Below, one piece after another: positions 2,881 through 37,329 of a stretch of DNA of 64,000 nucleotides (position 1 is its first letter; the number at the start of each line of letters is the position of its first letter). The position numbers and the translations under genes are program-made. Location: NCBI GenBank assembly GCA_904063045.1, contig CAJFCJ010000014.1, positions 1,981,643-2,045,642 of the forward strand, read 5' to 3'. This DNA comes from Dimorphilus gyrociliatus. Lineage: Eukaryota > Animalia > Annelida. The notes beneath the pieces were generated by a model, which was not told the origin of the DNA, ran no database searches, and was given only the letters and a program-made list of their open reading frames with translations.

Positions 2881-3610
2881 ATGAAAAAACAATCAATCAC
2901 AGTCAACAAGACGTTCACCATTCTCTACTCTGGAAATATCTTCCTCTCAATGACTTTTGTCGGGTTCTCACTTCTAATGCCCACTATTCAAAAGACTATG
3001 AAAAATTACTGCAGAAATACTAATTCAAATTGCTTGGTTGATGGAAATAAATTCAACTCAAACTTTGAAATCTTGTAATAATCTTTTTTTGAATCACAAC
3101 AACCATTATAGCTTTTTTCGTTTTATAACAGTCAAATTATTATTGGAGCCACATTCATTTTACTAGCATTTATTCTTACTCCTGTAGTTATTTATTATCT
3201 AAAGAGGAAGATAGATCTGGAATTACCATTATTCATGGTTCGTTTAGGTATATTCTTGGCAATTATGAGTATTATGTTCTGTATATTCTGTATCCTTTTT
3301 TATGAATTGTCCATTGGCAATTTACATAGAATTAAAAATATGTAAGTATTCTATTAAGATGATATTAAATATATCTAATTTTTTAAATGAACACAGCGTA
3401 ATCATCCCAAGTTCCATTTGTTTGGGCTGGTCGTCGTTTGCCTTAGTCTATTTTGTTTCCTATCTCGATTTATCAACAATTTCTTTAATTTTAAAAAGAT
3501 TTTTTCTGAAAGCCAATCATTCTTTAGATTATGCTTCTAGTGGAGATAAATATCTAAAACTACTAGCAATATCAACAAAGACAATAACACCAGAGACTCG
3601 GATATTTTGA
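2881..3610 (+). CDS. Orphan 4TM protein, array member 1
   Basis: Exons 2881-3074, 3132-3341 and 3397-3610 with two phase-2 GT-AG introns. Four hydrophobic segments; two Cys in the first loop (YCRNTNSNC). Confidence 0.75.
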
Positions 3611-5515
3611 AAGAATATGACTTCAACTTGAAACTTTTTAATAGTACAAAAGATTGCTATTCAATGAATAATCAATTTATACTTTGGTATTTAAATTCAA
3701 TGTATTTCTTACTGATTAAAAGTTAGTCAAGTTACGTGGAAAGGTTACAGGATGCGATTAATTATTTCCTGTGAACAAAATAGACCAATACAGATAATTC
3801 ATAATAAATGTGATAAATATACATTATTAGTCCAGTTGTTTGTTCCAGAATAAGGAGCTGAAACTGTAATTTCTTTAGATACTTTTATACAAAATAATTA
3901 ATCATTTCTATATTTAGAGATTGTTTCTAGATACTTATTAAACTAAAGAAGGACAATATAAAATATATAAGAGTACGTATATATTTTATATATACTATAT
4001 ATATAGTAAGAATATATATTAGCATCTTTATGTATACTATATCCAGTTCAAGTGCATGTAGCTTATCTTATTTTAGTGGCAAAGGGGAATTAAATTAATT
4101 AAGAAATTTATTATCTGCTAGTCTCGAATGCATTTAGTGCAAATTTATTGAAACGTCATCAAGTGGTGAAAAAATAGAACACTAAAGATAATTTTGTATG
4201 TCTCCAAAACAACTCAATACTTCTAGCTGTAAAAACACTTGACAACACTACCATTACATCCTACTTCCTGATTACTTTTAACTCTTCTTAATCGTAGAAT
4301 ATTAAAATTAAAATAGATATCGTCGCGAATTTTTACGAATATATAATAAAAGTTCGTTCTCCCTATACTGATAGGAATGCAAAAGGAAATAATAATATAA
4401 ATTAATATTAAGCTCTTTTTTTTTAGATGAACAGTTGATTATAGCACAGTAAGACAAGCTGACCAAAGCCGTCTAGCTGACCAAAACGTATTACTAAAGA
4501 TATTTAAAAAAGATGGAAAAAGACAGCGGGGATGGCGGAACTATAATTAATCCGCAATTAATTTCTTCTAAATTCATTGTATTTTATATTGAAAGTATTG
4601 TTCTCAAGAGAGGATTGAGAAGAGTCACTAAAAATATATTATATCTCTCATTGACAATGAAAAATATTTAATTTCATACTTTACTAATTAAACAAAGTTT
4701 TTAATATAATAGTTTAATGTGTATACAACGAATAATTTTTCTGATAAAAAATGATTTGTCACGTGATCCTAATTAAATTAGCTATCAACTAAAATAGTAA
4801 TACAATAAGAAAGCGTTAGAATTGGCTTGTCTATATTCTGGTTATATTTTACACAATCAATCTATTAACGTCTTATTCGACTTCAAGCGTTTCTTGTATT
4901 TTTTTTAAATCTTCGTATTAATTGTTATTTTAATAGTTCTATTTTCAATATAAATGTAGACAGAAAACTTTAAGAAATAAATATAAATACTACGAAAGAT
5001 GAATATACTTTGAGAACTATTAATAAAGTCAATAAAATAATTACAGTTGATGAAAGATAGTACTAAATTACAAAAAATACAAATAGAGTTCTTCGAAACG
5101 CAAACTGCAAAAATGACTGAGAAAAATATACCTTGAACTGTAGCAAAGAATTAAAAAAATTAGTACACTATTACTCCTATATCATTCATTGTTAAATCAT
5201 GAACCGATAAAAGATAATAGCATCTTCTCATATAAAATTTGTATAGTTTCTAAAAAATAATAAAAGAAATAAATAATATATTGTTTTCCTTTTATGGAAA
5301 AAAATCAATAGTTGACTGCATAATTTAATTTTCGCGTGGGTTTATAAACTGCTTACAAGCTTCGTCACATCTCACTTTGTAATGATTAAGGTAACAATTG
5401 TGTAATTTCATTACTGTCATGTTTCTTCTTTTTTGTTCATTTTAACACTAACCTATTTTTTTGTTATGTTTTAGTATATTCCATTTGATTTAAAAACTTG
5501 AATTATTTAATCATT

Positions 5516-6649
5516 ATGGGAAAGCTTATTAATAACTGGTTTTCGGCAATTGGTATCTTTATCATTGTATTTATCGTTTTCCCGTCAGTCTATATACTGA
5601 TGTTGAAAGATAATATTTACAAAGCCTACGAAATTATGCCAAAGGAAAGTCGAACGGCCGCTGAGGATGTTATCAAGGCCAATGTTGATTCGAATATGGA
5701 AATTTCAACAAATAATTTTTCATTGCTGAAAAATTATCTAAGTTCTCATAAAAGACATGAAAATGTAAAAATTGAACAATCTAACGTTTCAACTGTTAAA
5801 CAAAAGATTCAAGCAGATGTAAAGTGGTTTATTGCTGGGTAATTGTAATTTTGAATTTGATATAGTTTCATTTAGAATTTAGTATAGTACTTATACTCCA
5901 TTATTTTTCAGTGAATACGGACCTTTTGTTCTATTTTTAACTTTATTTGGCTTTTCTGCATTCTTTTGTCTACCGACAAGTTTCTTCTATATTTACAAAA
6001 GATGCTCAATAGATAATCCTCAGGACATGCATTATAAGACGAGAAAACAATTGTACTGCCTACTAATTTTGCTTATTGTTTGCTTACCAATGGCAACAAT
6101 TTCAATGTATACATTTTTCTTTAAAGCTCTAAGGAGTAGAGAAGATATACAATCAAAAGTTATTATTGAATCTTTTCGTCATCAGATTGGGTAAATGACC
6201 ATTTAATTATAATATCTTATGATTTTGTATTTCAAACAACATTTTACAAATAATTCAGATATTACGAAATTGCCTTATATGCACTATTTATGATGGGAGC
6301 TGGGTTTTCTTTAATGATTCCTTGCGCTTCTATTTATCTTTTACGCCAATTAAATCAAGAACAATACTCATTCGATGATTATTTCGGTGATGATGACGTA
6401 TTTAACACTACTGTTGTGGTACCAGCTTCATCTCCTGATCCTGAATCTCCAAAAGTTACAAGTCCCAAATTTCTAATTTCGGTAAAGATATGAAAGCTAA
6501 AACATTTATCACACTTTTCATTATATTTGCAGTTTCCAGGTTTAAATATTAATAAGAAAAAAATAATAGCTCCTCCAAGCTACAAGCTAAGGCCTCCAAA
6601 CTATGAAGAAGCTGTACTTACTCATTATACCTTTGAGCAAATAGATTGA
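5516..6649 (+). CDS. Orphan 4TM protein with tandem PY motifs (PPSY, PPNY), member 2
   Basis: Four exons starting 5516, about 5912, about 6260 and about 6532 (intron phases 2,2,0). Four TM segments; the tail reads APPSYKLRPPNYEEAV. Confidence 0.8.
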
Positions 6650-7806: not shown

Positions 7807-8800
7807 TTAAGGTTTTACACTAAATAGTGTTTCCATTGCGTTTTTCTCCATCTCTGATAGTGTTATCAGAATTTTTGATGCATCATCAATATATTTAACA
7901 TCTTCAGTTTCAGCAACTTCCTCGAAAAGTTGGGCAACTTGTGTCCAAAGTTTACTGATTTCTTTAAAATCAATGTAGGCATCATGATATTCCTCTGTAC
8001 CAAGCAATTCGTAAGACTCGAGTAAGAAATCGCGATACATATTGCGGAATACAGCACCACCCGTTCCAGCTCTCTCCATAAGCATTGCTAAAGTTCCAAA
8101 ATCCTTTTTGACATCTTTGCTTTCTTTAAACCACTTTTTAATTTCTGTGCTACTCTTAAGAATTCCTTTGTAGCCCATGTTCGATATTGGAGGGTTTAAA
8201 TAGCTTTTTGCATTATTATAAATGGCATTTTTAATAACAGCCTTTAAATCATAGGGTTCTGATCCTTTCTCTATAATAAAACTCTTATTTTTAGATGACA
8301 TTGGAGCTTTTTCACTTCTTGCTAGTTCTAAATTCTTTAATTTGGTTTTTAATTCCTTTTGTTCCGCTGTATCAATCATATATGCGTCCGTTTCGTCATA
8401 TCCAAATATTGTTGCATAATGGGCTCCAAAGTGAATCTTTTCAGGCATATAATCCATATAATCCAAATGGTAACAATCTAATTTTAGACCAACTGGAATG
8501 TCTTGATTCTTTAACATTTGTCCAAGCCTTTTTAATTGAAGCAGTTTCTTTTAATTCAACCTTTAGGTTTAAATTTTCGCAAATTTTTTGTAATAATCCA
8601 TCCGGTTTAGGCCGTCCACCAAAAAATGGTGTATCCATAGATTTCATTCTCCAACCCATATAATTTAGCCCTTCACCAATACCGAACAACATCGGTTCGG
8701 AGAGATCAATACCTAGATGTTTCAGCAAACATCCAACAGCTGTTGTCTCGCAATGTTGACCAAAAAAAGGTTTAAAGTTGTGTACTTTTTTCAAACTCAT
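7807..8800 (-). pseudogene. Bacterial-type BtrH N-terminal / DUF4872 protein (papain-like NlpC/P60 fold), intronless, one frameshift
   Basis: ORF 8441-8875 (ATG 8800: GQHCETTA, LSEPMLFGIGEGL, PFFGGR) overlaps ORF 7807-8517 (IPVGLKLDCYHLDY, HFGAHY, MERAGTGGAVFRNMYRDFL). These match my recollection of bacterial BtrH_N/DUF4872 proteins. The frames switch at about 8502-8517. This may be an assembly error rather than true pseudogenisation. Confidence 0.85.
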
Positions 8801-9671
8801 GCTGTTAACTGTAATTGTTGATTCCAAACGCAATTTACCTGCTAAATGGAGATTAAAAGAAGTGCACTCAAACAAGCAGACTACAAATTTTGATAATTCA
8901 AGTTTATTTTTAGAATATTATTGCTATTACTCTCTCAGGTAAATTTTATCTTATTAATCGGCAAGAGATACGGAAGAGGATAATCAACTTTAGAAATTAA
9001 GCAATTATAACACATAAATAAGAAAAATATCGAAACCGGAAAGGGAAATAGTTTTCAATTCGTTACGTTTTTAAATTTCGTTTAAAACTATTCTTCTGTT
9101 CTGTTGAAATCAACTAATAATATTACCGAATTTATTGAAAAATTAATACTTCAAAAATCGTGTCAGTAGAGTAGAGTAGTTTGGTTAATCTCTGACTGTA
9201 AAACGCAAATGATTCTCTATAGCTATATCTTACAAAACAAGTAGAAAGTAAATTTAGATTGTATTGAAGGAAAGTATATATATATATGTTGGATCGACAA
9301 ACTACAAACGTCGATAATGGACTTTACATAGGGGAAGATTAGTCATGTTCTTAATGAATTGAATTTGAAGATAACATAGTTCAAATAATAGTCAAGATTC
9401 AAGGACGATTTTAAATGTTTCAGGTCTTCTTAAACATTTATGGAAGAGTTAAATATAAGAAAAAAAGATATAATATATACGTAAATAACATTGTATATAA
9501 CGATCTATGTTGATATACAGCAAATATTTATGAAGCTTTTGTTTTTCTTAATTGCCATATAGTCTTTCCTTTTAGACTCTGTAAATACGAAAGAAGATAA
9601 GATTGAACAGGTAATCCGTATTTTCTGATATTTTGTCTAATGATAAAGTTACTTTAAATGGCTAATAATGT

Positions 9672-10782
9672 TTATTTCTTATGTACAATTGAACTATAGG
9701 AAGGAGGAGGAGTCATATCATTATCCTTGTTTATGTTTCTTCAAGTACAAAAACAAAAAATTGAAGAATATTAATTAGAAATTGAATATTTGAACAATAA
9801 ATTGTTTACCTTGTTGGGTTAACGTTGGTAGTCCTATATAAATAAGTAGCAGTATCCCTTTTTCTTGATATGTTGTTTATTTCTGAAGGATCTCTTTCCT
9901 GGTAAAAATATAGATATGTTATTTAGATATACTATAGATACTCTATTAGATATAGCATATAGTTTACGAAAGTTTGCTTGAAATAGATTGATTTGAAATA
10001 TTTAATATAAATTGACTTACAATCTCTTCTTCGTTTCGGATATCACTTGAAATTTTTGCTGCTGCTTCTGCAATAATATATTTACAGTATATTATAATCA
10101 AATTTACTTATATTAATTAAAATAAAGCTTTACTCTTTTTTTCCATAAAGTATATCAATATTAATGCTGAACGCCAAACAAAAAGTGGGACTGCTACTAC
10201 TAATCCATAGATCATTCGTATTCCATATTTATAATATTTACTATTATGTGGATTATTGTAGTCTCCGCATACTTTCAAGCTATTAACTGATGGATCATAT
10301 ATGACTAAGTAAAACATGTTCAAGCATATTATATACGCATAGTTAATATTCATTAAACCAGCAATTCCAATTTTAAAATTTAAACTTCCATAATCTAAAT
10401 ACTTTAGACCAAATGGTAATCCAAAACCCCCAAGTAAGACAGCAACGACCGTCGTAGCTATCATATAGCATTGATATTTTCTAAAAGTGATCATATTTTC
10501 CATTTATTTAAATAATGTATAAATAATAATAAAGTTTAACACTTACGGTACTATGAATGATGTTACAATACAAACTTTCGTATTTATAGTTGGGACCTCA
10601 GTTTTATTGATTTCGTAGGGTTTTAGTGATACATCTTCAGGTATGGCTTTATATGAAATTATCTCACCAAAATTTTCCCTCCAAATGATAATGTGGTAAA
10701 TAGGGCCAATAGTAACGCTTGCCAATATGCCTAAGAATGTGATATTCGCACACAACAGCAAAATTCCTTCTTTAGCAACCAT
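9672..10782 (-). CDS. Orphan 4TM protein with PPPSY tail, member 3 (subfamily B)
   Basis: Five exons, intron phases 2,1,0,2. Motifs GPIYHIIIWRENF, KVCIVTSF, NYAY and KVCG; the last exon encodes MTPPPSYSSIVHKK. Confidence 0.85.
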
Positions 10783-11387
10783 ATTTCTTAGTAATGTTTA
10801 TCACAAATTTACTGGTATAACCAAATAAATTTCTTGATCAACACATTCGCGTCTACAAGTTTTTCTGTTAAATATACTTCAACGAAGACTTGTTGACGAA
10901 CGAATGTATCTTTTATTAATTATTTTCACTATTTATACCATTTTCTTCAGTTAGCACTACTCAATCATAAGCAAAAACTGATAATTAGGCCTGAGTGAAT
11001 AAATGTTTTCAATATGACATTTTTTTTAGTCTCAGTCTAAATTAGGTTGGAAAGGTTGTGTTATATATATACAGTATATATGTTTTACAATGCTATATAT
11101 ATATATAAAAGATCATCTATAACAATATTAAAGCTACATGGTGTTTTTCAACTTTCTCTAAAGCGTTACAATTTCAAATGTAATTAATTAATCTTTTTGC
11201 CTCTTTGATATTTTAATTAAAACAACTTAAAATACTAGTTAAACATTACAAACAATTATTTTTATTGATTATTTATAGAAGTTTTTATTTGAAAAAATAT
11301 TAATTTGCTAAAATAGAAAAAAAGGAACAATTAAAATGTTTTTTGTTGAAAAACGTTGAAAATGATAAAAAGTCCCCTAATCGGTAA

Positions 11388-11424
11388 ATATATATCTATA
11401 TATCTATATATATATCTATATATC

Positions 11425-11459
<35 letters not shown>

Positions 11460-11460
11460 C
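11388..11460. repeat. (TATATC)n/(TA)n microsatellite
   Basis: Read directly from the sequence. Confidence 0.9.
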
Positions 11461-11613
11461 GTATAAAAGATAAAAATAGGTTACAAGCTTTTTAAATATC
11501 AATGACAATTAATAAAAGAAAAAAATATTTATAATATAAAAATGGTACTTTTGTTCAATTCTTTAAATTTTCTCTATCTTTACTTAGCCAATTAAAGATT
11601 GTTACTTACTGAT

Positions 11614-12462
11614 TTATTTCTTTGAAATAAAATCCATTTCTGTAAATTCCTTGTTATAAAGGAAAAAGAATAATACGGTTATGTAAAATAAGGAAAATGA
11701 TATCATTCAACTTACTAAATTGGAGTGATTTTGAATATCATTTGAGATTTCGTCAATATTTTCTAAATTTAAAAAAACAAATGGAAAATATTTTATAAGA
11801 AACAAGCAAGGAAATAAATTTTTACCAGCGCATTCTTTACTATACATCCATAAAAGTATTGACCTCCAAATGAGTAGTGGTATAGCAACGACTGACCCAT
11901 AAATTATTCTTATTCCATATTGGTAGTATTTATAATGATGATAATAACCGTGTTCTCCGCATATTTTAAAATTATCAACAGTTGGATTAAATATAAAGAG
12001 ATAGTAGATATTTAAACATATCACATAGACATAGTTAACTATCATTAAACCAGTTACTACAATTCTCAACTTTGAACTTTGAATTTCTATATAATTAATT
12101 CCAAAAGGAAGTGCTAGGGTACCAAATAACACCATGATTGCAGTGTAAGATATCATTAGTTCTTGATAGTGCCTAGAATTCACAAATATTTTGAATAAAC
12201 TGTTCAATAGTAACAATATATCTTACGGTTTTATAAAAGAAGTCACTATGCATATTTTCATATTTGAATTCATAGCCTGAGTTTTATTAATGCTGATAGA
12301 TATTAATGATCTATTTTCTATGATAGCCTTGTATTCGAGCACATCCGTAAAATTCTCTCTCCACGAAAGAAGATGATAAAATGGACCAATAGTTACGCTA
12401 GTTACTATTCCTAAAATTATTCCACAGGAACACATAATCAATAATCTTGTTTTAACAATCAT
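11614..12462 (-). CDS. Orphan 4TM protein, member 4 (closest paralog of member 3, short tail without PY)
   Basis: GPFYHLLSWRENF, KICIVTSF, NYVY, KICG and IPLLIWRS align with member 3. Same first three intron phases (2,1,0); the fourth exon stops after EFTEMDFISKK. Confidence 0.85.
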
Positions 12463-12912
12463 TCTATCAATCTATCTATTTCCTTTATTTTATCCCGTTA
12501 AACATGAAAGAGTCTTTTATTTGTTAATTTTTTATTAATTCAATCAATTCTCTTTTAAGGAAATAACTTGTCAGCTTCAAATATTTAGCTTACTTCATAG
12601 ATATTCTATTAAAGATAGTTTACATATTAAAAACAACCTTCAAAGTAATTTCTTATAATGTACAGTGTCCGTAAATACTTTCCCATATTTGTTTTTTTTT
12701 TGTCTAATTTTGAATACAACTCTTTAGCTTTGCTATATTGAACTTTCTGTAATATAATTGATATATATTAGTATATATATACATATAAATTTATATATAA
12801 AAGGAATAAAAAGTGGCATTTTATCAAAATTCTACAATTAAAATAGGATGTATATATAGAAATAAACTATTTCTTTTTCCTCTTTAAAATATTCTTTAAA
12901 AGTTATATATTT

Positions 12913-14006
12913 TTAAAATTCGCTTCTGTTTGAAGAATTTTCATCTTTATTTACTTCCGGTTGCGATAGCCAGTAGGAAAGTGAAAATACACTTGAAAAC
13001 ATAGTATGAAAACTATTTAAAAACGTCTCATTTGAGGTTGGATTATCGATGTTGGCATGAGATGACGGTGATGAGTTTAAATTTGATTTTGATATATTCG
13101 GTGATTGATGCATAGTATTAAATTGTTCAGGAGATGACGTCTCATTAAAAAGATATCTAAAAAAATTAAGAGAATAATATGGAAACTTGATAAATTAAAA
13201 ATAATCTTACCCTTTATTTATAGAGCCGGATGGCAAATTTTCAGTAGCTAATGTTTGAAACGCTATTGCTTCTGTAATACGAGGCTGAGTAAGTGATTAA
13301 TCATTAAGTTTAAATAGACAATTACACTTGATGTATACTTACTGAATTATTTTGTTTAGGCGTAGTCACAAAATCTTTATTAACTTGATCAGGGATACTC
13401 CTATCGCCAATTAAATTTAAGCAGATAACTAAATAAGATTGAAATGAGATAATTTTAAAGGAATACGAAAGAAAACTTACAAAGCATAGCCAAGTAAATA
13501 AATTCGGGCAGTGAAGCAATTGATAGTAAAACGTATGAGACTAGAAATTTTGGCGCTTCGACACTTTCATCACAGTTTAGAGAATGATCAAAAGAAGCTC
13601 TCTTTTCGTAAAGGATACTTATACATATCACATAAAAGTTGTTGAGTATTACCAATACAATAAAGAATATATTAAAATTTGAACAACAGCTGTACAAGAT
13701 ACAAGGCAAAAGGACGAAGGAAGTAAACACTGATATAAAAATTGGATAGCCCTCGATTACTGAAGCAAATCGTCTGTAAATAACTACTAATTATGAATTA
13801 TATAAGAGATATAATAAATTAACAAACAGGTTCTTATATTGTATATTCGTACAATTTCTATATTCTTCTTGAACTATTTCAGAGGTTCTTTCAAAATTTT
13901 CCTGAGAGTATAAAACATGGCAAACGGGTCCCAAAGTTAAATTTGGAAGGGTAAAGATTGTTACAAGCAGAATCGGTAAAAATAATTGTTTAGAGTTTTC
14001 ATTCAT
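12913..14006 (-). CDS. Orphan 4TM protein, member 5 (subfamily B, Ser/Asn-rich tail)
   Basis: GPVCHVLYSQENF in exon 1. Five exons with phases 2,1,0,2, joining the ORF-track pieces at 13791, 13455, 13322 and 12913. Confidence 0.7.
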
Positions 14007-14431: not shown

Positions 14432-15469
14432 TTATAATTTTGTTTTTATAGACTTATCTTCACTTTCCTCTGAAATATTTAAAGTTGTGACTGAACTTGA
14501 TAATTCTTGAGAGCTATCTCCTTCTCCAAGAGATTCAGTGTGATCTTTATTGAATGATGATTCAGTTGTTGAACAACTTGAACAATTTGTTAAAGTAACT
14601 GTTGAAGGTTCACTTTGGTCAGAAGGTTGCAGCCTTTCGTTAATTTCTAATGCTCTGAAAGTTCTAATGGATTAGTATTTAACAGAAATATTCTATTACT
14701 CATTATAACTTGCCTGTTATCATAGGAAGCGGTTGCAACATTACTTTCTGTACTATTTCGCACATACATTTCATTATTATGCAGTTTACATCGATTAGCG
14801 TTATTGGTAGAATCGTAAGTAAAGTGCTCTTTTAGTTTCAGAACTATAAATGGGACAAAAGTATTAAAAAAAAGACTAATCTGTTGTTTAAAGTTTATTT
14901 GAAAAATCTAACTTAAGATTAGAAAGGCAACATGACCTAGTATTCCAATTGCCAAGAGTGTATAATCAGTTGTAAAAGATGTCGCTTCAAAGTCATGTTG
15001 TTGACACATTGAATATTTTTTCAAGGTAGTTCTCATCGTTCTCTCACATAGAGAAATTATGCAAAAAGCGTAAACGATACTATAAATAATTAACAGTTCA
15101 ATTACTATGAGTGCTCCAAAAATGCCTTTACTCAATTTCGAACCGTTGCAAAAATATAAACAAGTAATAAAAGATAATCCATTAAAAATAACAAGTAAAA
15201 AGTCATAGGATTTCACTATCTCAATATGTTGTCTATGGAACAAAGATGACTGCATGATACTATTCCAGTATCTCAACTACTGAAAAATATTTTACTTACA
15301 TTTCAAACTTGTGCACTGTACAGTTTTTTGTTAAGTTACCAGTATATCTTATAGAGCGATAGAAATCAGTTTCATAATAGAAAATATTCCAAGAAGCTCC
15401 CACAAATAAACAAGAGAAGGTAAATAAGATAAAGATGATAGAAGTAAAAATTCGCCATATTTTCTTCAT
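14432..15469 (-). CDS. Orphan 4TM protein, member 6 (Ser/Glu-rich tail)
   Basis: ATG 15469 (MKKIWRIFTSIIF...KNCTVHKFE), phase-2 intron, then a TM2-TM4 exon within ORF 14908-15276, a phase-1 intron and an acidic Ser-rich terminal exon. Tail splicing is partly uncertain. Confidence 0.7.
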
Positions 15470-16138: not shown

Positions 16139-16802
16139 TCATTTCTGAATTCTTTTCGTAGACTAGCTAAGGTTTGCTCTCCCTTCTTCGCTACAATAGT
16201 TTTTACATACAGAGAAACTACTGAACAAGGTCATTCAATGAGATTTACAGGAATTTGGTATAATCTTCATAATATATCAATTGTAATGAAAATATTAAAA
16301 TGAGATTACTGTATTCACCTAATAAAATATGAAATGCCATTTGTTAAATTCATTATAATTGAAAAATCTGAGTTAGGACATTGAGTATATTGAGAATATG
16401 TTAAATTATTGAAGTATTTATGCATTACTATCATAGAATAAAGAAAACTTATAATTTCTGTGCTTATAACAAAAACGTTAGGGGTCATAGATGCCAATAA
16501 GCAAATTTGTACAAGAACAGACCCAAATACTACAGTTGCCGGATAGTATTTAACAAATGAAAGATAATTTCTAAAAGAAAAGGATTTCATTATACAACTA
16601 TTTCATTCGCAATAAAGGTTACTTACAAACTATTTTCGTAAACCATTATACAGCGTTTTCCTTGATATTCAGTTAGTTTAACTGCACCTTCGAAATTTTC
16701 TAGATAATATATAAAGTGGCAAAGTGGCCCTAGGAGAACACTAACAAAAATCGTTGTTTTGTAAATTGCATTTTTAGCTAGATAACATTTATCCTGCGTC
16801 AT
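16139..16802 (-). pseudogene. 4TM member 7 with a probable nonsense codon in TM4
   Basis: Exon 1 has GPLCHFIYYLENF...KRCIMVYENS and a phase-2 intron. Exon 2 lies in ORF 16315-16590. Exon 3 reads RLYQIPVNLIE*PCSVVSLY with TGA at 16231-16233, close to the Trp in TM4 of members 3 and 4. Confidence 0.6.
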
Positions 16803-17569: not shown

Positions 17570-18420
17570 ATGGTATCAACAGAAGAGAAAGTTACTGAAA
17601 ATAATAAGGATAGATATCAGACTATTGGACTCATTGTTTATGTTTGTATTTTAGCTTCTATCAATTTTGCTTGTGTGGCGATCCTACAAATTCTTATCTC
17701 AAAAGTGGATTTTCATCAAATTCTTGAATTTAAGAGACTTTATAATCATTCGTTAGGAAATTATGAAATAAATAGGGATTTGTCTATGACTCAGAATTTA
17801 AGAATTATCGAACAGAAAAAAGATTCTGAAAATGAAGTCTGTTTGATTACACTTTATCACAGGCCGTAAGATATATTACACTTCTTATATATGTTAAAAT
17901 AATAGCCATTTTGTTTATGATAATAGGCCTTTTGACGTTTGGCTAGTTGGCTTTGTACCCTTTATAGCATCATCAATTGTTGGACTTTTAATAATAGTCT
18001 TATCTTTGCTACCCTATTATACATTTAGTTGTAAAGCAAAAGCAATTGGTATTTTCATGGGCAGTGCAATAGTAAATCTCTTATCATCTGGTATTTATGG
18101 TACTGTCCGTCTGTCTTTGTTAAATAAAACTGTTGGAAAATTGAAATTTTGTCCCGATTACATAGTGACGAGGTTGGAGGATCTTTTCTAAAATCAGTGA
18201 ATTTTATATTTTCGTCTTGCCATCTATTTTTTTTTGTATTTCTTTTAGATATGAAACCAAAGATGCTGAAGATCTGTTCAAGCTATTAGCAGGCGTGGGT
18301 TTCTGTGGTATATTTGTTTTTCCAGCCTTCTATTCAATATGCTTGAACGGTCGCCATAAGGACGACTATGGAGAAGACTCGGAGAGCCAATTTTCAGATT
18401 CAGTTGAAGCTTTGAATTAG
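17570..18420 (+). CDS. Orphan 4TM protein, member 8
   Basis: Exons 17570-17866 (EVCLITLYHRP), about 17927-18170 (KFCPD) and 18250-18420, with two phase-2 introns and four TM segments. Confidence 0.75.
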
Positions 18421-19700: not shown

Positions 19701-20536
19701 ATGTTCTATTGTAATGTATTACACAACTGTAAAACTATTTTATTTCATATAATTCATATTATTAGCATGCAGCTTGTTTTTAATATTGGTATTATTTATT
19801 ATCTAATAACATATCATTTAAATACGCAGTATAGACATTTTCCTGAGTTAATTAGTGATCATAAAATACTGTTAGAAAATAATAGAGAAGTAGGATTGAA
19901 ATTATTAAGAAATATCTGCTTTGAGATAGAAGTTAACGAATGGTAAGTGAACGACATTTTTATCTATTTGTATTCTAACTAACTGATTTCTTTCTTTTTT
20001 GTAAATCTTTTATATATATATGAATAGGTTTGGAATAATTTTAATATATATTTTGGTCTTAAGCAGTCTAATGTTTACGAATCTATCAAATATGTTTATA
20101 ACCTTTGGCTATGGATATCATCTTTCGATTACCCGGATGCAAAAGAAAATATTTATTATCTATGGACTAATTAACTACTGCTTTACAATTTTTGACCATA
20201 TTCGATATATTTCGCAAACACCAGCTAATAATCTTGCAATTTGTCATTTGACTACCTTTGAAGGGATCAGAGCTTTTCAATATATATTAATATATATAAT
20301 AGGATTGACTTGTCATATCTTTGGACAAATAATATTTTTTAATTGTGCAGGTAATGTAACTAAAAATAAAGTATTGTTTATTTTATTAAGTTTTTCTCTT
20401 CTTTTAAGCGAAAGAAACTAAAAGTCAAGAATATCTTTATAAAAAATCACAATTAGATTTCTATTGGATAAATATATTCAAAGCAAATGAAACTAATTCG
20501 GAAATTATTAAAAAAGAAGAAGAAATTCCTGTATAA
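19701..20536 (+). CDS. Orphan 4TM protein, member 9 (immediately upstream of IL-17 copy 1)
   Basis: Three exons, phases 2,1. NICFEIEVNEW|FG junction; GLINY; AICH; tail AKETK...EEIPV. Confidence 0.75.
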
Positions 20537-23028: not shown

Positions 23029-24031
23029 ATGGCTAAGCAAAGCGCTTTTGAAAAAATACACAGATCTTTTTCAACATCATTGGTTATAATTGTATTATTG
23101 TTTAACTTATCCTATGGGCCAATATATCATATAATTATGTCTCAAATAAGCATTGTTAATAGAGTCAGATACATCACATATACAGAAAATAACACAAAGG
23201 CTTTGTATATTACAAGGAATAATGCTTTGAATATAAAAGATAAAGTTTGCATGGACGTAACCGTTTATAGTTGGTAAGTAAGAGAATAATTTAAAAACGA
23301 TAACTCATATATAGTTTTTTCAAAAATTCTTTAAGGTTTGACATGATGACACTATACGTTTTGGTTCTAGTCAACTTTTTTAGCTTTTTCTTAATAGCTC
23401 AATTAATAAAGAATACATCGTATCGTTTTCTTCCTGAACTATGGACGAATATAATTACTGTTCTTGGAATAATGAATTATATTTATGCAGCTATTTTACA
23501 TTTTATTTTATTGAAATATAAGAAGGAACAAGCTGACATTTTTAAAATATGCGAAAAATACAATGTTGATGGTTTTACATACTTTTGTTTATGTTTGGTA
23601 GGACTTTTCTTTCATCTATTGGTTATTGGTGGGAGTTTATTTCAAATAGGTTTGTTTGATAATTGATAAATTAAAACTGTTATGTTTTTTTTTATTTTCT
23701 AATTTTAATCTTTGTTTTGTTTGTAGCTAAGCATAAAAAAGGTTTAATAAAAATTCTGGGTATACGCTGTCATGAACTGTCTGAAAATGATCTCGTCAGT
23801 GATACCAGCTCTGATATCTATCAAATTCGAACTTTAAATACCTCCAACGAAGAAATATCATGGGATGACAGTAATGAAAGTTTAAAAGTAATTTTTTGTA
23901 ATTTTCAATAACGACTAACAATATTAGATAACTTTTTTTAGATAAGTAATTTTGCTGCTTATTACCTTGTTAAAACCTCTTCATTGGCTGAATACGAGAT
24001 TAATTCAATTAGATCATATATATCTAGTTGA
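23029..24031 (+). CDS. Orphan 4TM protein, member 10 (between the two IL-17 genes)
   Basis: GPIYHII (identical to member 3), KVCMDVTVYSW|FD, GIMNYIY and KICE. Phases 2,1,0. The last exon 23942-24031 is tentative; the alternative stop is at 23911. Confidence 0.8.
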
Positions 24032-27055: not shown

Positions 27056-28018
27056 TCATTTTTCACTAATAAATGTCTCAACAGTGTTATTATTTTGAGA
27101 GTTTACCCCCGTAATATTCATAATTGACTCGTAAGACGGGGGTAGTAAATCATCGTGTTGTCCAAATAATGGAGGATTTCCATCTCCATTCGATAGCGAA
27201 TACGAAGGAGGAGATCTAGAATCCGATAATTGCGAGGAATTCATGTACCTAATAAAATGAATTATCTATTAATTTTAATAGAAAATTTTATAGCGAAAAT
27301 ACCTTATATTTTGTGATATTGTATTAAGAATTTCCAAGTGGTTTTGGGGGCCTATCTGTAAGTTATCGGATGTAGCAGGCCTTTGATTTTCGTGATCCGA
27401 TTTAGGAGATAAGACTAAATAAAAAGAGATTATAAACAAACACATATATATTGTGATATAAAAAAACTAACGTATACTCATTAAAAAGCATACATTAAAG
27501 AACATTGTAATTCCTATAATAATAAAGTATTTCTTAAATGTTGGTCTTTCACAGTCTAATTTGCAGAATTTATACAAATTAAGAGATGTTTCCATTGTTG
27601 TTATGTATCTAAGGATGATACAAAGAGCATAAATATGGCTAAGAAATTCAAAAAATCCCAGAAGAAATGCAACAGATAATGAGCATTTGCTTATTCTTGC
27701 GCAAGAACATATGCATATACCAGGGAAAATAGAACATATGGATAGAATTAGAATTACTATAGACCAACTTTCTGCTATTCCAGCATATCTCCTTTTAAAA
27801 GAATAAAAGAGATAATTTATATTTTACATACTTAACAATATACATGCTTACAATTGATATTTAGTTATGATACAACTTTTTTCCAACACTCCTTCATATT
27901 CGATTCCTTTAATAAAGTCTTCTCTAGAATATTGAATATGCCATATTGGACCCAACAGTAGAATAGGAAATGATAAAAATATAAGAATAACAAATACTAT
28001 TAGAGTAAAAATATCCAT
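27056..28018 (-). CDS. Orphan 4TM protein with two PPSY motifs, member 11
   Basis: Exon 1 has GPIWHIQYSREDF...KSCIITKYQ. Exon 2 (about 27478-27790, absent from the ORF track) has three TMs and KFCK. Phases 2,1,2; the tail contains SPPSY and LPPSYE. Confidence 0.8.
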
Positions 28019-30141: not shown

Positions 30142-31106
30142 TTAATTTCCATCGTTGTTTACAAGACTGTAAGGAGGAGGTGGACCAAATTTTTCTTTTT
30201 CAATATCCTTAAATAAAAATACAAATAATAAAAATTTGAATTATTTTTAATAATTTTAATTTCTTACATTTTCAAATAGTAGAACATCAACTGATGAAAA
30301 GTCTTTAGTTTTTCCTTCCTCCGTGTCTATTATATTGGTAATTTTTTTAGAATCTCTTTTATCTATTTAGAAAATAATGTAAAAATTAGAAAATAATTTA
30401 ATAAAGTTATTGAAAACAATTACTTACAATAAATTTTAAAATAAAGTAAAGATGTGACCAATAGGGCTATAGTTACAGCTAAAAGTGCGATTACATAATC
30501 CCTGTTCAATAATAAAAAAAGTTAATTATATATATATATGTATATATATAGATACTGTATAATAAAAATATGTAAAACCTTAAGTTGTATCTGCCGAATA
30601 AACAAAGCTGCCAGTCACCAAAGTATTTACAAGCTAAAAGACTCAGTATAATACCAATGAACAATACTGCTGAAACCATGGTATAGCAAAGACATATTCT
30701 GCCAAACGGTTTTTGCCTTGTTTTAGACAAATAGATAACAAATACGACATCAATTGGAATGAGAAAGAAAATCGCATATTTAATATAAACTGAAATAGTT
30801 CTGTAAATAAAAACAAAAAAGAAAGTATATTAATTCAATTTCGCAATATTTAGATTTTATATAACTATATTACCTGTCATGAATTTTTTTCCCCATAATA
30901 CAGAATTTATTTGATTTTAAAATATTATTCATACAAGAACTGATTGTTGAATTAACTGTATCAGTTTGTCTTTGTAGCAAAAATTCCTCCACATTATTAT
31001 AATCTGTTATTTTTATTTCATAGAAAAATGGCGATAGCAAAACTACACAAATTAACAGGGAACAGATGACAAAGCCATTCTTAATTCGACTATCAGATTT
31101 GGACAT
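30142..31106 (-). CDS. Orphan 4TM protein with PPPPY tail, member 12
   Basis: Five exons, phases 2,2,1,0. KFCIMGKKIHDR| and QLCL; the terminal exon encodes DIEKEKFGPPPPYSLVNNDGN. Confidence 0.8.
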
Positions 31107-31533
31107 GTTTAATAAAAATATCTTTCTTCTAAAATATTGAAATCTTTATAAAATTTCACTTGTGCTGATCTGATGTCAAGTGAATTAAATGAAATGCTGT
31201 AATGTAATGACGTCAGAGAATATTAGCTATTGAAATGAGTTCTTGTTGAAACAGTGTCCATAACTCACAGAGTACATAGTCCTCTACAGTTTATTTCTAC
31301 ATAAAACACGTGGACTACAGTTTTGCATATCGTATAAGAAATTTATTTTATTGATTAAATTCTTTCAACAGTCTGTAATAGCAAATAATAATAAAACGAA
31401 TAAAAATGAAGAAAAACCCTTTATTATATATTTATGCACAACTCTACTATCCGTTAACATAATTATAAACTTTCACCCAAAATAATTAATATGTTATTAA
31501 AAATATTATATATTAATAAGTATAGTAACCTAA

Positions 31534-32313
31534 TTAGGAGTGTATTACATTACTTAAGACTATTTGATTCCTACGAAGATGATAACTTTCGTATCTTCTA
31601 CCTAATTTAAAAAAAATGTTTTTCATTCAGTTTTCTTATAATTAATTAAGTAATTAATTACCATAATATTTAGAACAAATAGTAATATTAATAACAAGAG
31701 ATGCTATACCAACCAGACAACCTAGTAGATATCGTCTAAAAGATATTTTATATGATATTTATAGAGTTTTCAAAAAGTTTAAAAAGTTCAACCTTTCTGG
31801 TTTTCCATCAAGGAAACATGGTTTCCAAAACGTTTCAAATAAATTGGAAGATATAACTAACCAGAAAATGAATATTATCGAATGAAATATAAATAAAAGT
31901 ATAAAATTAATAGTTTGTAGCAATTGAAACTTCTTTGCCTTTAATAACAAACATAAAAGATTGATATCTAGCATTATGCAAATGATGATTGTCAGAAAGT
32001 TAGCTTTAAGAGATAATTGCCTAAAATATTTTATATTAATAAATATTATTAATATACAGTTTATATTCGAATATTACCTTTGAAAATCTTTTTTAATTAT
32101 GCAAATTTTATACCCAATAAGAAAATTTGTTACGTAATTTTGAAATCCTTGCTTTTGTAGAGATGTATCATTGTTATATCCTTGGAGTTTGTTGTTTTCA
32201 TCAAAATCATACAAAAATGGTAATGGTAACGTAGTAAATGTAATTATAATTACTGATAATAAAACGAATTTTATTCGAAAAACTAATGCAGATACGTGAA
32301 CTGATCCAAACAT
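31534..32313 (-). CDS. Orphan 4TM protein, member 13
   Basis: KICIIKKDFQR| phase 2, KPCF in loop 2, then phase-2 and phase-1 introns as in member 12. The 3' end is uncertain. Confidence 0.7.
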
Positions 32314-32932
32314 TTCTATCCTAAAATTGAATATCATATGATTAGAACTTTTTCATTTAGAAATTTATTCAACAATAAAATCTTTATTCTTAATCTTTTG
32401 AATTCAATTAAATGTTAAAAGAGAGAGAGAGAAAGAAAAATGATCAACAATTAATCAGTTGAACAGAGAGTTCATTATCTTTTTTAATATAGCATGTAGT
32501 CGTTTATTTTTATACAACATACTTCTTGTTCACTTGTTAAATAAGTCTATCTGTTTATTTATTATGAGCGACAAATCAGAATAGGCTCATACCTAGCTAT
32601 AACTTTCTACTTCCTTATTGGATAGACACTTTTTCGTCAAAGTGGTAAATGGACAAGCGTAAAAGTCTTAGTAAATAAATTATATTGTTTAAAGTCGGAA
32701 GAGAAAGAATTTAATTTGCTTACAAAGGTTTCTACAACAATTAATTTTGATAATGATACAAAAGAAAGTGATATTTATTTTTCCATTGCCAATTTCTCGG
32801 CATAATTCGAATTAAAGTTCTGAAAAATGATTTAAAAGATAGAAAAGGTAAAAAAATAACATAATGTAAATTGAAGTTATTTAGTAGATAATCAAAGTTC
32901 ATATCGTTGTTGATATATCTTTCTAACAGTCC

Positions 32933-33948
32933 TTAATTTTCCCTAGATGTACTCGGCTGTTCGCGTGTTTGCCAAGATGAATTAATGGTTGAGAATCTTG
33001 ATTTATAGCTGGGTGGAGGACTTTCACCGTATGGGGGAGGAAAAGGTACACCATTTGAAAGTCTTTGAACATTATCAGCAGCAATCTCAGCGTCATTTAT
33101 AACGGATATTCGTACTTGATTCTTTTGAAAAGGGAAGATAATAAAGCAATTAAGTATATAAAACCATATAGCTAGCTAATAAAAACACACTAACTTCGAT
33201 ATTCCTTAAATTTTGACTGTTACGATGCCTTGATGATCGGCTAACACTTTTAGCACTTTTCAAGACGAATACTGAAAATTATTAATATAATTAGAGTTAA
33301 TTCCTTAAGAATCTTATTAACTATTTTAAAATCTTACAAAATATACAAATAGTTGCTGTAAAAACAAAGTAAAAACACAGCAAAGCTCCATCTAATGCTC
33401 TACAAAATATATATATAATGTGTAATTAAATGACAGATAAAACATAGAATTGATTATATTCCTACCGAAGAACCAAAATAGGACCTGAATTAACTGTTTG
33501 ATTATTCCTCACTAACATCACAATCTCAAAAAATAAACCAATTATAAACCAAAAATGGAAGAAAATATGATGCCACCATTTTTCTTTCTTCTTTTCTATT
33601 ATATATATTGCAGGTATCCATAGAAATAGTATTAGTATCTTGAGCACATACGTAACTACCAAAATGACAATAAAAGGACTGAAAAGATAAGTGAGAAATG
33701 ATGCAGAATTCACAAATATTAGTTTAAAAGATATACAGTATATACACATACATTTTATAAGATATGTCCAAATATTCGAACGGATCAGTTTCTTTTATCA
33801 ATTTACTATTAGATTGTAATGTTTTATCCATTTTTGTAAATTGAGAGAAATTCTCAAAAATAAAATAATTAAACAGAGATAAAAGTATATTCATTATGAG
33901 AATGATTGTAAAATTCAAATATAGACAGATTCTTGCCGATTTTTTCAT
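32933..33948 (-). CDS. Orphan 4TM protein with PPPY and PPSY, member 14 (subfamily C)
   Basis: Five exons, phases 2,2,1,0. TM2 motif YVLKILILFLWIPAIY; tail PFPPPYGESPPPSYKS. Confidence 0.8.
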
Positions 33949-34982
33949 TGTTCTCTAATAAAGATATCAGTATGAGGAGCTAAGTCGTAAATAACTATAT
34001 AGATTTAGAGAAATTGAATTTCTTACTGTTCTTTAAAATCCTTCGCAATTATCCAAAAAAGAAACGTTGAGACAGTAAAATACAAGTTGACAATTATTTT
34101 TACACTAGTATCGTGTACTGCGTGTACACAGTATAAAATTGATATATAGTTTAATTCTATTTTCAGGACATTTGTCATTGAATATACCTAGATGTTCAAT
34201 ATTACCAAATGCTTTTATAAATACCTTTTCTAACCATAGAATATATTATATTTTTATTCAAACTTTCCTTTGAAAGTACTCTTGTAATCGAAGATTTTAG
34301 CCTATAAATTCTTCGTGACTCTTATACATTGGTAATATAGTATATAGAACAATGTAGATCACTTCAATATTCTAACCATGCAGTAGAATAGTTATATACT
34401 TAAATTATATTTTGCAGATTATGAAAAGCAAACTTTTCTTCCAGTTGTTAACATTAAAATCTCAAATTTTAGTTTACTTCTTTAATCTCCAAATATAGTT
34501 AAGCAAGTCTGACCGTTGGATTAATAGTTTTCAATAGAGAAAAATCCATAATATTGTGATATTTCTTTTTGTTTATGACGTTGGAAACTTATAAAATAAT
34601 CGATTAGTAATATTAAAATCATTAGTTTACTATGAATTATTGAGCCTTTGTGTCTATTTATATTTTATATATAAAAATTTTAAATAATTTTGTCCAAAGA
34701 TATAAATATTAGGTGTTTAAATTACCAAAAATAATTAACTTGAACATGTAGAAAAAGACTTTCTTCCTCTTTCAAAACAGTATTGTTATTATTTATTACG
34801 ACTGTTATTTATTGTAAAATTGAATATATGCTCTATTTATACGGTATACAGTATATATATTGCATAATGAAGGAATATAGGTACAAATAGACAGTTTCAA
34901 AACGGATTCTATTCATTTTCAATACCAGTAAAAAATTTATAACTTTGCTAACTAAATTTTAGTGATTAACGATATTTGTTTC

Positions 34983-35705
34983 TTATATAGTTGTAGGACA
35001 ACATTTCCTATTAATACAACTGCCAAGATATGCTAAAATAAAGAGATAGGCTTTAATATAAGTTTTTATTGTCTATTTAAAAAACTTACCAAAACATGTA
35101 TAAAGTAATCCAATTAAAACAAAACTTAGCATATATAATAACGGCATAAAACTGCAATATTAATAATATAATTATACTAATAAGGAAGAATTATGCCAAA
35201 AATCTTACCTAATACTTGGTAATGTATAAGCTAACTTAGACTTCTTAGAATGATTATACGTAAAGAATTCAAGGAAAAAATTTAATATTAGTAAAAAATA
35301 TAATAAAGTATGACAGATGGCTTTTTGTCTTTCCTTTAAATCATACAAAGCTGGGATCCATATTATAATAAATAAAATTTTTATAATATAGGTCAATGCT
35401 ATGAACGCAATGAAAAAGCTGAAAATATTTAATGATGAGCGGAATTTACATATTTTATTAATAATAATAAAAATCAATATCACTAACCTTTGAGGAATAA
35501 TGTTCAATTCATGTAAAATATCGTGTGATTTATTCGTAATAATCGATCTATCGTATCCTAAATCTATATATGGTACCACACTACAAATTTCATATAGAAA
35601 AAATTGTAATATAGTTAAAATCGGTATTGTTGTTGAGAAGATGCAAAAATTTATCATTATCAAACAATCTGAAGATATTTTCCTAAATCTAACAATAAGT
35701 TCCAT
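34983..35705 (-). CDS. Orphan 4TM protein, member 15 (subfamily C, short Cys-rich tail)
   Basis: ORF 35205-35705 reads through a 69-nt stopless phase-2 intron. Motif YIIKILFIIIWIPALY; the tail ends GSCINRKCCPTTI. Confidence 0.75.
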
Positions 35706-36047
35706 TTTGCGAAATGTGAAGAAGTCTATTCAACTGGATGATTTGAAAAATCTCATAAAAGTGGAAGTTGGTTGCAAAGATCATTTAGTATTAGACATTA
35801 TACCGTATATATATATACAAATTTATATACTAATATATATATATATATATGTATTCCTTCATTGTTGATGAAGCAATCGGCCGTAGCCTTCTCTACTCGA
35901 TTCAATAAAGAATTCAAATTTTACTACTGTATTAAATTTTTACTATACAAATGTACAATAAATTGGTCTATTTACGTGACGAAACTGAGTTTATTATTAA
36001 CTGTTAGCCATCGTGTTTAAAGAAATAGTTGTTTGGACATTACTTGA

Positions 36048-37329
36048 CTACTTTGAAAGATTAGGTTCGGTGTTCGATGATTCGTTCTGCAGTATTGTTA
36101 CATTTGGCTGCTCTGACATACAAGCAGTATATGAAGGAGGATCCGAATCGTAAAATGTAGCTATTGGCTCATCAAATAAATATTCATCAGCGACAGCGTC
36201 GCTAAATTAACGTGACATACAGAAATTTTAATATATACAAATTCTACTAGTTTCGTATACTAACTCAATATCGGTACAAGTAGTATGAGTATCCATCGTA
36301 TTTCGGGATGAAATTGACAAAGCATTTAAAATGGAAGGTGAATGGATGATATCATTGGATGTAGACGAAGATATCGGCTGATGTAATCTACTACAATGTA
36401 TTGTTAGGTAATTGCTAATATTTAAGAATATTTAATACAAGCTAATATTTTGATTATGCTCCTCTGAATAAATACTAAGAAAATTAGATGACACTACAGA
36501 AATTCCTTGACAGTTGGAGCTCTATTAAAAGTTCAGAAAATGATTAAAAATGAATTAACACTTTTTAAAAAAGTCGATATCTTTTACCCCATTAGTCCTA
36601 TTTATTGTTTGCATTTGACTATTTTCGCTTAGATTGCCTCTTGGCAATTCTGAAGAAAGATTTTTAGATAGAACATCTAAAAAATATTCATTTAATAGAT
36701 TATATCTACAAAATAAGAATAAGAAATTATTAGAATATTTACATCGGAGAGCCTGTGATATATCAATTAAAATATAAAATCCAAGGAATATTCCAGCTGA
36801 AACTCTGAAAGAATATTCAAATTTTTTCGATTAAATCTTTACAGTATCTTTTTTACTGTTAAATACAAACTGAATAACTTTAGGTGAACCAATTAAATTA
36901 GTGGAACCTATTTTCGATAACATTGAACATTCTAAAAGTATATTTAGGATAAATATTAGATGAAAGATAAAATATAATCTATATTTCTTCTTCTCGTTCA
37001 TTTTATAAATAGCTAATAACCATAGAACCACAAAGAAACATTTTAAAATATAGGATATAACAACAATTGTTAAAAAATATCTGAAAATGTTCAAGTATTA
37101 AGTTTATAATATTTCAGTTTAGATATACAAACGTTTCATGAGAGATTCCTAGAACTTTAAAAGGATCAATTTCCGGATATGTTGTTGGCTTGGTTGAATT
37201 ATTTAATATTTTATCATACGGTATATTTGTCATTATTGAAACAGCAAAATATTTAAATGTTGTTATTAATGGAATCGTTAATAAAAATAAAACAAAATTA
37301 ATCCACAATACTATTTTATTAATAGCCAT
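36048..37329 (-). CDS. Orphan 4TM protein with PPSY, member 16 (subfamily C)
   Basis: The DPF motif in loop 1 is shared with member 14; TM2 motif YILKCFFVVLWLLAIY. The terminal exon has DSDPPSYTAC. One internal tail exon could not be phased exactly. Confidence 0.7.

Follow-up and report, generated by a model that had tools for sequence, protein, structure and literature searches.

In the annelid Dimorphilus gyrociliatus, a stretch of about 35 kb holds 16 candidate genes in tandem, five on the plus strand and 11 on the minus strand. It lies at positions 2881-37329 of our window, the 64,000-nucleotide segment of contig CAJFCJ010000014.1 (assembly GCA_904063045.1) that was analysed as a whole. 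The gene plan at the 16 loci is the same: a short N-terminus, a first transmembrane segment (TM1), a variable loop 1, a phase-2 intron, TM2 and TM3, a short loop 2, TM4, and a tail. On balance, and with moderate confidence, we read the stretch as a mostly unannotated array of a taxon-restricted four-pass family (or a few related families), the products being glycoproteins with disulfide-linked loops, some of which would engage Nedd4-type ligases. This reading starts from direct observations: the genes themselves, the splicing of four of them, the common gene plan, the motifs, and the lack of detectable relatives.

The D. gyrociliatus genome is described as streamlined in gene content: only nine of its families are expanded, and its mean family size is the smallest recorded for annelids (PMC7854359). 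The candidate family would have at least 19 members in this genome of few expansions (16 in the window and three on another contig), and further members occur on AT-rich contigs. The official annotation mostly omits these four-pass genes or merges them with neighbours; the gene-number, orphan, and expansion counts for the species are therefore underestimates.

Gene plan, splicing and annotation

Stop-to-stop open reading frames (ORFs) with hydrophobic segments lie in adjacent pairs or triplets at 16 sites between 2881 and 37329. The G+C content of the window is 24-30%, and the introns measure 52-69 nucleotides (nt). A first-pass annotation made from the letters alone had proposed about 16 genes in tandem on both strands, and this array stands as follows (protein lengths in amino acids, aa; PPxY is the ligase-binding motif treated in the last section):

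g01, 2881..3610, plus strand: predicted exons 2881-3074, 3132-3341, 3397-3610; 205 aa; first intron in phase 2, four or five hydrophobic segments, neither PPxY nor a sequence link to other members.
g02, 5516..6649, plus strand: predicted exons 5516-5838, 5912-6190, 6259-6481, 6533-6649; 313 aa; long cysteine-free first loop, TM4 in exon 3, tail ending in APPSYKLRPPNYEE with PPxY at 6572 and 6593.
gA, 9672..10782, minus strand: RNA-supported exons 10782-10547, 10480-10134, 10067-10021, 9898-9810; 261 aa; the final exon, 9738-9672, is predicted and encodes a terminal TPPPSYSSIVHKK before the stop.
gB, 11614..12462, minus strand: exons 12462-12227, 12172-11826, 11762-11716, 11649-11614 from a spliced contig; 221 aa; no PPxY.
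gC, 12913..14006, minus strand: exons 14006-13828, 13773-13481, 13428-13343, 13284-13211, 13156-12913, with spliced contigs from two sequencing runs; 291 aa; Ser/Asn-rich tail without PPxY.
gD, 14432..15469, minus strand: exons 15469-15300, 15232-14913, 14843-14714, 14654-14432 from RNA, one intron being GC..AG; 280 aa; acidic, Ser/Thr-rich tail without PPxY.
gE, 16315..16802, minus strand: predicted exons 16802-16627, 16570-16315; carries GPLCH..LENF and both loop cysteines; TM4 and a tail were searched for and not found, and the gene may be incomplete or decayed.
gF, 17570..18420, plus strand: annotated as DgyrCDS10143 (P0002 in our searches); 237 aa; longest first loop (ca. 59 aa); short, acidic tail without PPxY.
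gG, 19701..20536, plus strand: predicted; exon 1 19701-19942, exon 2 from about 20028; no PPxY.
gH, 23029..23911, plus strand: predicted exons 23029-23273, 23336-23649, 23727 onward; GPIYH, both loop cysteines, four TMs, no PPxY.
gI, 27056..28018, minus strand: exons 28018-27852, 27791-27472, then tail exons; the last ORF, 27265-27059, encodes PPSYSLSNGDGN...LLPPSYESI.
gJ, 30142..31106, minus strand: predicted; exon 1 31106-30874, exon 2 from 30800; the last exon ends in GPPPPYSLVNNDGN before the stop, a PY module very similar to that of gI.
gK, 31654..32337, minus strand: predicted exons 32337-32078, 32020-31762; exon 1 terminates in YKICII; TM4 in a further ORF, 31758-31657; no PPxY.
gL, 32933..33948, minus strand: exons 33948-33752, 33678-33466, 33399-33338 (TM4); member of the cysteine-free subgroup; the tail ORF, 33175-32936, encodes PFPPPYGESPPPSYKS.
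gM, 35090..35705, minus strand: exons 35705-35488, 35418-35209; the TM4 exon ends at about 35090, its acceptor being provisional; PPxY was looked for in this gene and none was found.
gN, 36048..37329, minus strand: exons 37329-37133, 37080 to a boundary at 36857, 36796 onward (TM4), then tail exons; the last ORF, 36206-36051, encodes DSDPPSYTACM.

Public RNA reads were assembled over 9900-15600. One run from 2017 yielded a 6172-nt contig of the minus strand from which 13 introns, all GT..AG or GC..AG, had been removed; a coral metatranscriptome provided independent evidence for two of its joints. The spliced contigs place the first-intron joints, all GT..AG, at 10480/10547 (gA), 12172/12227 (gB), 13773/13828 (gC), and 15232/15300 (gD), and their joined pieces give full ORFs for gB, gC, and gD (221, 291, and 280 aa) and cover gA up to residue 210. 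In each of these four genes a phase-2 first intron separates the end of loop 1, with its conserved cysteine, from TM2, and gF has this phase-2 intron in its official model. At the other loci the best, and often the sole, frame-keeping GT..AG pair is a phase-2 intron at the end of loop 1 (checked for gL, gM, and gN by reading the DNA), and exon 1 likewise ends on a phase-2 donor in seven relatives outside the window. The proposal that every member has a phase-2 intron just before TM2 is borne out by this evidence. The exon models that accompanied it are proved at the introns of gA to gD and annotated for gF, but remain predictions for the other 11 genes.

Hydropathy gives four segments in most models, with TM2 to TM4 in exon 2 for gA to gI, and TM4 in exon 3 for g02, gK, gL, gM, and gN. 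The four-TM architecture ascribed to all members thus holds for most, but gE has no recognisable TM4 and gK has it in a separate ORF. An apparent TM2 in gM is intron sequence, because its 166-aa ORF runs through an in-frame, stop-free intron of 69 nt; this ORF was therefore rejected as a full-length reference.

The official annotation holds only five models between 7570 and 28420 of the window: a fusion containing gA, gF, two IL-17 genes, and a fragment of gI. Only gF is annotated correctly. The fusion, P0001 (499 aa), wrongly joins a mis-spliced gA to a BtrH-like gene, and gI is represented by a 142-aa 3' fragment at 27056-27595. No official model exists for gB, gC, gD, gE, gG, or gH; gB, gC, and gD are nonetheless transcribed and spliced.

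The BtrH-like gene lies immediately downstream of gA (7807-8875, minus strand) and encodes bacterial-type BtrH_N/DUF4872 domains according to Pfam. It is divided over ORFs that overlap in different frames (8441-8875 and 7807-8517), and therefore has an intron or frameshift there. The 6172-nt contig spans gD, gC, gB, and gA with the intergenic parts kept. Within it, a 619-nt GT..AG intron, with its donor at 11609, a few bases past the gB stop, and its acceptor at 10990, links the last exon of gB to a point ca. 200 nt upstream of the gA ATG, and contains a TA/TATAGA-type microsatellite (11383-11465). P0001 additionally splices exon 4 of gA onto the BtrH-like gene. Five co-oriented genes (gD, gC, gB, gA, and the BtrH-like gene) thus appear to be transcribed together, by read-through or as conjoined transcripts. 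An operon was considered and set aside: spliced leaders and operons are reported absent from this genome (PMC7854359), and the assembly of overlapping or read-through transcripts suffices as an explanation.

Relatedness of the members

Within the window, BLAST links gA, gB, gC, gD, gE, gF, gG, gH, and gI at E < 1e-4, and joins gL, gM, and gN into a separate trio. The pair gJ/gK is weak (E 0.5 at best), and neither g01 nor g02 has a BLAST link to any window member. Scored against shuffled sequences, a gA-gI profile gives z = 8 for gG and z <= 3.4 for the remaining genes, while profile-profile comparison of the groups by hhalign produced nothing significant. All 16 genes had been presented as one family; what sequence similarity delivers is a group of nine (gA-gI), a group of three (gL, gM, gN), a weak pair, and two unlinked genes. 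The strong divergence claimed for the members is real: the closest pair, gA/gB, is only 48% identical. The rapid birth-and-death diversification proposed with it is unsupported, as the array offers neither close paralogues nor identified orthologues on which dN/dS could be computed.

An exon-1 profile built from two members retrieves eight exon-1 ORFs at E < 1e-11, with TM1 in all eight; GPxxH and E(N/D)F are found in most of them, in diverged versions in gD and gF. The combined motif GPxxH...E(N/D)F, as first described, is present in gA, gB, gC, gE, and gI, but gH has GPIYH only. In an alignment of 11 exon-1 pieces a cysteine a few residues before the exon end is invariant, and the exon-1 ending K-x-C-I is common to gJ, gK, and the gA-gI group. 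The PY modules, too, are alike across groups beyond the motif residues themselves: PPSYSLSNGDGN in gI and PPPYSLVNNDGN in gJ; PPSYKLRPPNYE in g02 and PPAYSLFPPNYE in a member on contig CAJFCJ010000005.1; PPPYGESPPPSYKS in gL and PPPYDSIPPSYES in P0004, a protein from that same contig.

That all 16 genes form one family is likely but unproven. Common descent is likely because the position and phase of the intron are common to all groups, gJ and gK share K-x-C-I with the gA-gI group, and the PY modules are alike across groups. The best-surviving alternative, which we nevertheless regard as unlikely, is that several unrelated families (gA-gI; gL-gM-gN; gJ-gK; g01; g02) stand side by side and came to their architecture and PPxY by convergence or by exchange of terminal exons. 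Such an origin would agree with the non-significance of every between-group link by BLAST, hidden Markov model (HMM), or hhalign, and with the way the cysteine-free groups divide the core differently, giving TM4 its own exon. It fits poorly with an identical phase-2 intron position in all groups, with the shared exon-1 ending, with cross-group PY modules that match over more than the four motif residues, and with the physical adjoining of the groups.

MAFFT alignments of gA to gI repeatedly set TM3 and loop 2 (with K-x-C) over TM1 and loop 1 (also with K-x-C). The internal 2+2 TM duplication hinted at by these alignments was rejected: hhalign of the two halves gave a non-significant P = 0.037 over 25 columns.

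Relatives elsewhere, known families and folds

An exhaustive search of all 1.84 billion representative proteins with the exon-1 profile returned six matches: P0001, P0002 (gF), P0004, two 77-aa exon-1 ORFs located on AT-rich assembled contigs, and one weak 272-aa protein. No other annelid or spiralian proteome among these proteins gave a match. In a word-based protein search the exon-2 ORF of gB matched nothing, and the family alignment recovered only gF itself. The orphan status suggested earlier therefore stands at the sequence level, the HMM search having matched only D. gyrociliatus and a few AT-rich contigs. Taxon-restricted membrane-protein families are common in invertebrate genomes, and given this commonness the finding is useful rather than startling.

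P0004 belongs to a second cluster at 7860-15080 of CAJFCJ010000005.1 (L007), whose three members all have paired PPxY. Its exon-1 ORFs are:

8756-9019, minus strand: first exon-1 ORF.
9989-10237, plus strand: exon-1 ORF of P0004, whose official model apparently misses TM2.
13763-14095, plus strand: third exon-1 ORF.

AT-rich contigs from other runs hold more members, in tandem or head to head:

L002, 993-1590 and 4603-5292: two members.
L005, 512-793 and 1273-1551: two members, arranged head to head like the pair on L007 but only ca. 50% identical in exon 1.

These AT-rich contigs share no non-coding similarity with the known loci, and may come from another dinophilid species or from additional loci in the D. 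gyrociliatus genome.

Searches for known families were uniformly empty. With gF and P0004 as queries Pfam returned no family at E up to 10, and with the exon pieces it returned none at E up to 1; NCBIfam gave no match; and PDB sequence searches with the exon-2 profile and with gF gave zero matches at E up to 10. Screening the 16 models with regular expressions turned up neither CCG, nor GLW, nor the claudin pattern W-GLW-C-C, which confirms the statement of the first-pass annotation that the signatures of tetraspanins and claudins are absent.

For structure, AlphaFold was run twice on gF, with two family alignments as inputs, one of them partly misaligned. The models reached a predicted local distance difference test (pLDDT) of 60 and 66 and a predicted template-modelling score (pTM) of 0.43 and 0.44, with two to three strands in loop 1. 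When these low-confidence models were compared with AFDB clusters, Swiss-Prot models, the PDB (twice), and the Atlas, and searched with VIA-align (wide and second look), only generic helical-hairpin matches were returned, all with E > 0.4 and template-modelling (TM) scores < 0.35; claudin-3, TARPs, pannexin-3, and LRRC8 occur among Foldseek rows with a non-significant E > 1, and the VIA matches to claudin-3 and TARPs are non-significant as well. The check by AlphaFold and Foldseek proposed at the outset thus assigns no known family, although with models of this quality and matches that are all non-significant. In the ESM Atlas the nearest clusters to gF are unnamed (score 0.89), and the nearest named ones are PMP22_Claudin, L_HMGIC_fpl, Claudin_3, and Amastin, at 0.78-0.80, which by the calibration of the tool is a lead only. 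A query with exon 2 of gA returned nothing usable.

This lead raises the question of very diverged claudin/PMP22/LHFPL/TARP proteins, with a beta-sheet loop 1, acting at cell contacts or as auxiliary subunits, to which PPxY was added secondarily. We consider such an identity improbable. All named Atlas neighbours of gF fall in this group, but with scores under the level that the tool requires for more than a lead; loop 1 exceeds loop 2 in length and has three predicted strands, but it contains one cysteine, as does loop 2, in place of the two of a claudin loop 1, and W-GLW-C-C is absent from 16 of 16 models. TARP gamma-3 and gamma-8, TMEM202, and claudin-3 do appear among the weak Foldseek rows, against which stand the E-values and TM-scores given above for all fold matches, and the complete lack of Pfam matches for gF and P0004 at E up to 10, including PF00822, PF13903, and PF10242. 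Diverged LAPTM-type or CD20/MS4A-type proteins, that is, PY-bearing adaptors of the lysosomal or plasma membrane, are very improbable: four TMs, a bigger first loop, and a C-terminal PPxY make the layout alike, but neither Mtp (PF03821) nor CD20 (PF04103) is matched by gF or P0004 (E up to 10) or by the exon pieces, the PDB sequence searches over all deposited chains are empty, and neither family is among the Atlas neighbours. Just as hard to credit is that the unannotated members are for the most part copies in decay or ORFs formed by chance in AT-rich DNA, only gA, gB, gC, gD, and gF being functional: the official annotation does leave most members out, gE lacks a recognisable TM4, and hydrophobic ORFs arise easily in such DNA (the false, intron-derived TM2 of gM is an example), yet at every locus the exon ORFs are paired and keep the conserved motifs, the cysteines, and the phase of the intron, the run behind the spliced contigs contains 54% of sampled words of 27050-37040, and all three checkable unannotated genes (gB, gC, gD) are spliced with intact frames.

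Topology, PPxY tails and likeness to known systems

All 11 genes from gA to gK have a cysteine where loop 1 ends and a single one in loop 2; g02, gL, gM, and gN have neither. Because the two are jointly present or absent, a disulfide between the loops is suggested, and it probably occurs in 11 of the 16 genes. N-glycosylation sequons are concentrated in loop 1, and the loop between TM2 and TM3 is net basic (+9 summed over seven genes); cytosolic termini fit these two features. The presence of four TMs, the placing of the sequons, and the charge of the loops lead us to infer that the tail is cytosolic. In the topology we propose, loop 1, of 25-70 residues, would be extracellular and would carry most sequons and the predicted beta strands; the basic loop would join TM2 to TM3; the second ectoloop would measure 15-30 residues; and both termini would be cytosolic, the C-terminal one being a low-complexity tail assembled from small exons.

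PPxY occurs in six of the 16 genes: g02, gA, gI, gJ, gL, and gN. Over six frames the window contains ten PPxY, compared with 3.3 +/- 1.9 in shuffles within 200-nt blocks, and nine of the ten are on the sense strand downstream of TM4 in these six genes. Their placement exceeds chance. For g02, gA, gJ, gL, and gN, exons can be chained in frame as far as the PY exon; for gI, the official 142-aa model covers late exon 2 through the end of the PY ORF. This fragment model and P0004 both connect PY exons with the core. No PPxY occurs in the tails of gB, gC, and gD, which have RNA support, or in that of gF, which is annotated. PY tails as a general trait of the array, which had been claimed, cannot be upheld; since ten members are without PPxY, ligase recruitment cannot be the function of the whole family. 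The link to Nedd4 ligases proposed at the same time is a reasonable one for the six PPxY members, but not for the remaining ten.

The motif activates ITCH/Nedd4 ligases by binding to their WW domains, which opens the autoinhibited ligase, and PPxY membrane proteins can themselves be ubiquitinated (PMC8811627). Six array members have PPxY on a membrane protein whose tail is predicted to be cytosolic, which would place them in the Nedd4-ligase adaptor class, a class defined by function and not by homology. The PPxY tails (six here and three in the second cluster, with one or two motifs) would bind WW domains of Nedd4-family HECT ligases. A PPxY member would then be ubiquitinated and removed from the surface; alternatively, in the manner of NDFIP, LAPTM, and ENTREP, it would bring or activate the ligase near adjacent membrane proteins. 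Ligase control would not extend to members without PPxY, loss of the last exon freeing paralogues. PY-bearing members may either limit their own presence at the surface or serve as ligase adaptors. Of the functional proposals, only the ligase-adaptor part is plausible. Some paralogues of the array have PPxY and others do not, a natural series that would allow a direct test of the effect of a Nedd4-binding tail on surface life.

Several points weigh against a single four-pass family with disulfide-linked loops and ligase-engaging tails. Eleven of the 16 gene models are predictions (four have RNA support and gF is annotated), as are most tail-exon joins. Homology of gA-gI with g01, g02, gJ, gK, gL, gM, and gN is unsupported by BLAST, HMM, or hhalign. 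PPxY is missing from ten of 16 genes, gE is possibly decayed, and the structure models (pLDDT 60/66, pTM 0.43-0.44) are of low confidence for both the fold and the disulfide.

Two genes with an IL-17 domain are embedded in the array on the plus strand, at 21072-21656 and 25572-26171 (PF06083, E 3.5e-11 and 9.4e-12); they lie between gG, gH, and gI, and are strongly similar to each other. Further along the window, two tandem paralogues at 51694-57896 (plus strand), with a large N-terminal part followed by short TM-rich exons, have the look of adhesion G-protein-coupled receptors (GPCRs); after them come an aquaporin (59548-60507) and a rhodopsin-type GPCR (61205-62290, minus strand). The immune, allorecognition, or chemosensory roles once suggested for the array have no direct support, their sole hints being the IL-17 genes and the remark in the genome paper that local expansions in D. 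gyrociliatus are mostly of immune genes (PMC7854359). It is doubtful that the array and the IL-17 genes form a worm-specific locus of immune or surface recognition, in which variable disulfide-linked ectoloops meet a ligand or partner and PPxY copies couple this engagement to Nedd4-mediated endocytosis. If true, this would be a recognition family without counterpart in other animals, hidden from the published annotation.

Among known four-pass systems, connexins, innexins, pannexins, and CALHM proteins have two or three conserved cysteines per external loop and at least 300 residues with family motifs, whereas the array proteins have one per loop or none; Pfam shows no match to these families, and the Foldseek rows for pannexin-3 and LRRC8 have E > 1 and TM-scores < 0.2. 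Tetraspanins resemble the array in their four TMs and in forming large, diverged invertebrate families, but have a large second loop with CCG in place of the short one here, which spans 20-30 residues in the seven members measured. Claudin, PMP22, LHFPL, and TARP-gamma proteins share with the array four TMs, a loop 1 longer than loop 2, and strands predicted in loop 1; claudins, however, have W-GLW-C-C with two loop-1 cysteines, and their fold is a four-helix bundle with a five-stranded sheet built from loops 1 and 2; our low-confidence models place two to three strands in loop 1 only.

LAPTM4A, LAPTM4B, and LAPTM5 are four-pass proteins with cytosolic termini, a larger first lumenal loop, and a C-terminal L/PPxY that binds Nedd4-family ligases. 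Like these Mtp proteins (PF03821), the array proteins are small and four-pass with a larger first loop, and six have a C-terminal PPxY; no sequence or profile match links the two. The LAPTM genes are conserved animal genes of one to few copies, in contrast to the array family, of which a single species has at least 19 strongly diverged copies, the majority lacking PPxY. The comparators had been introduced as four-TM proteins with PPxY: this agrees with the LAPTM layout, but not with the studied isoform of ENTREP/FAM189A2, which is described as a single-pass type I protein with a CD20-like ectodomain (PMC8811627). NDFIP proteins have three TMs and N-terminal motifs, unlike the array proteins, and neither NDFIP nor ENTREP has sequence similarity to the array, for which ligase binding is putative. 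What NDFIP1/2 and ENTREP/FAM189A2 have in common with the array is PPxY on a membrane protein, and paired PPxY a few residues apart are found in the array too.

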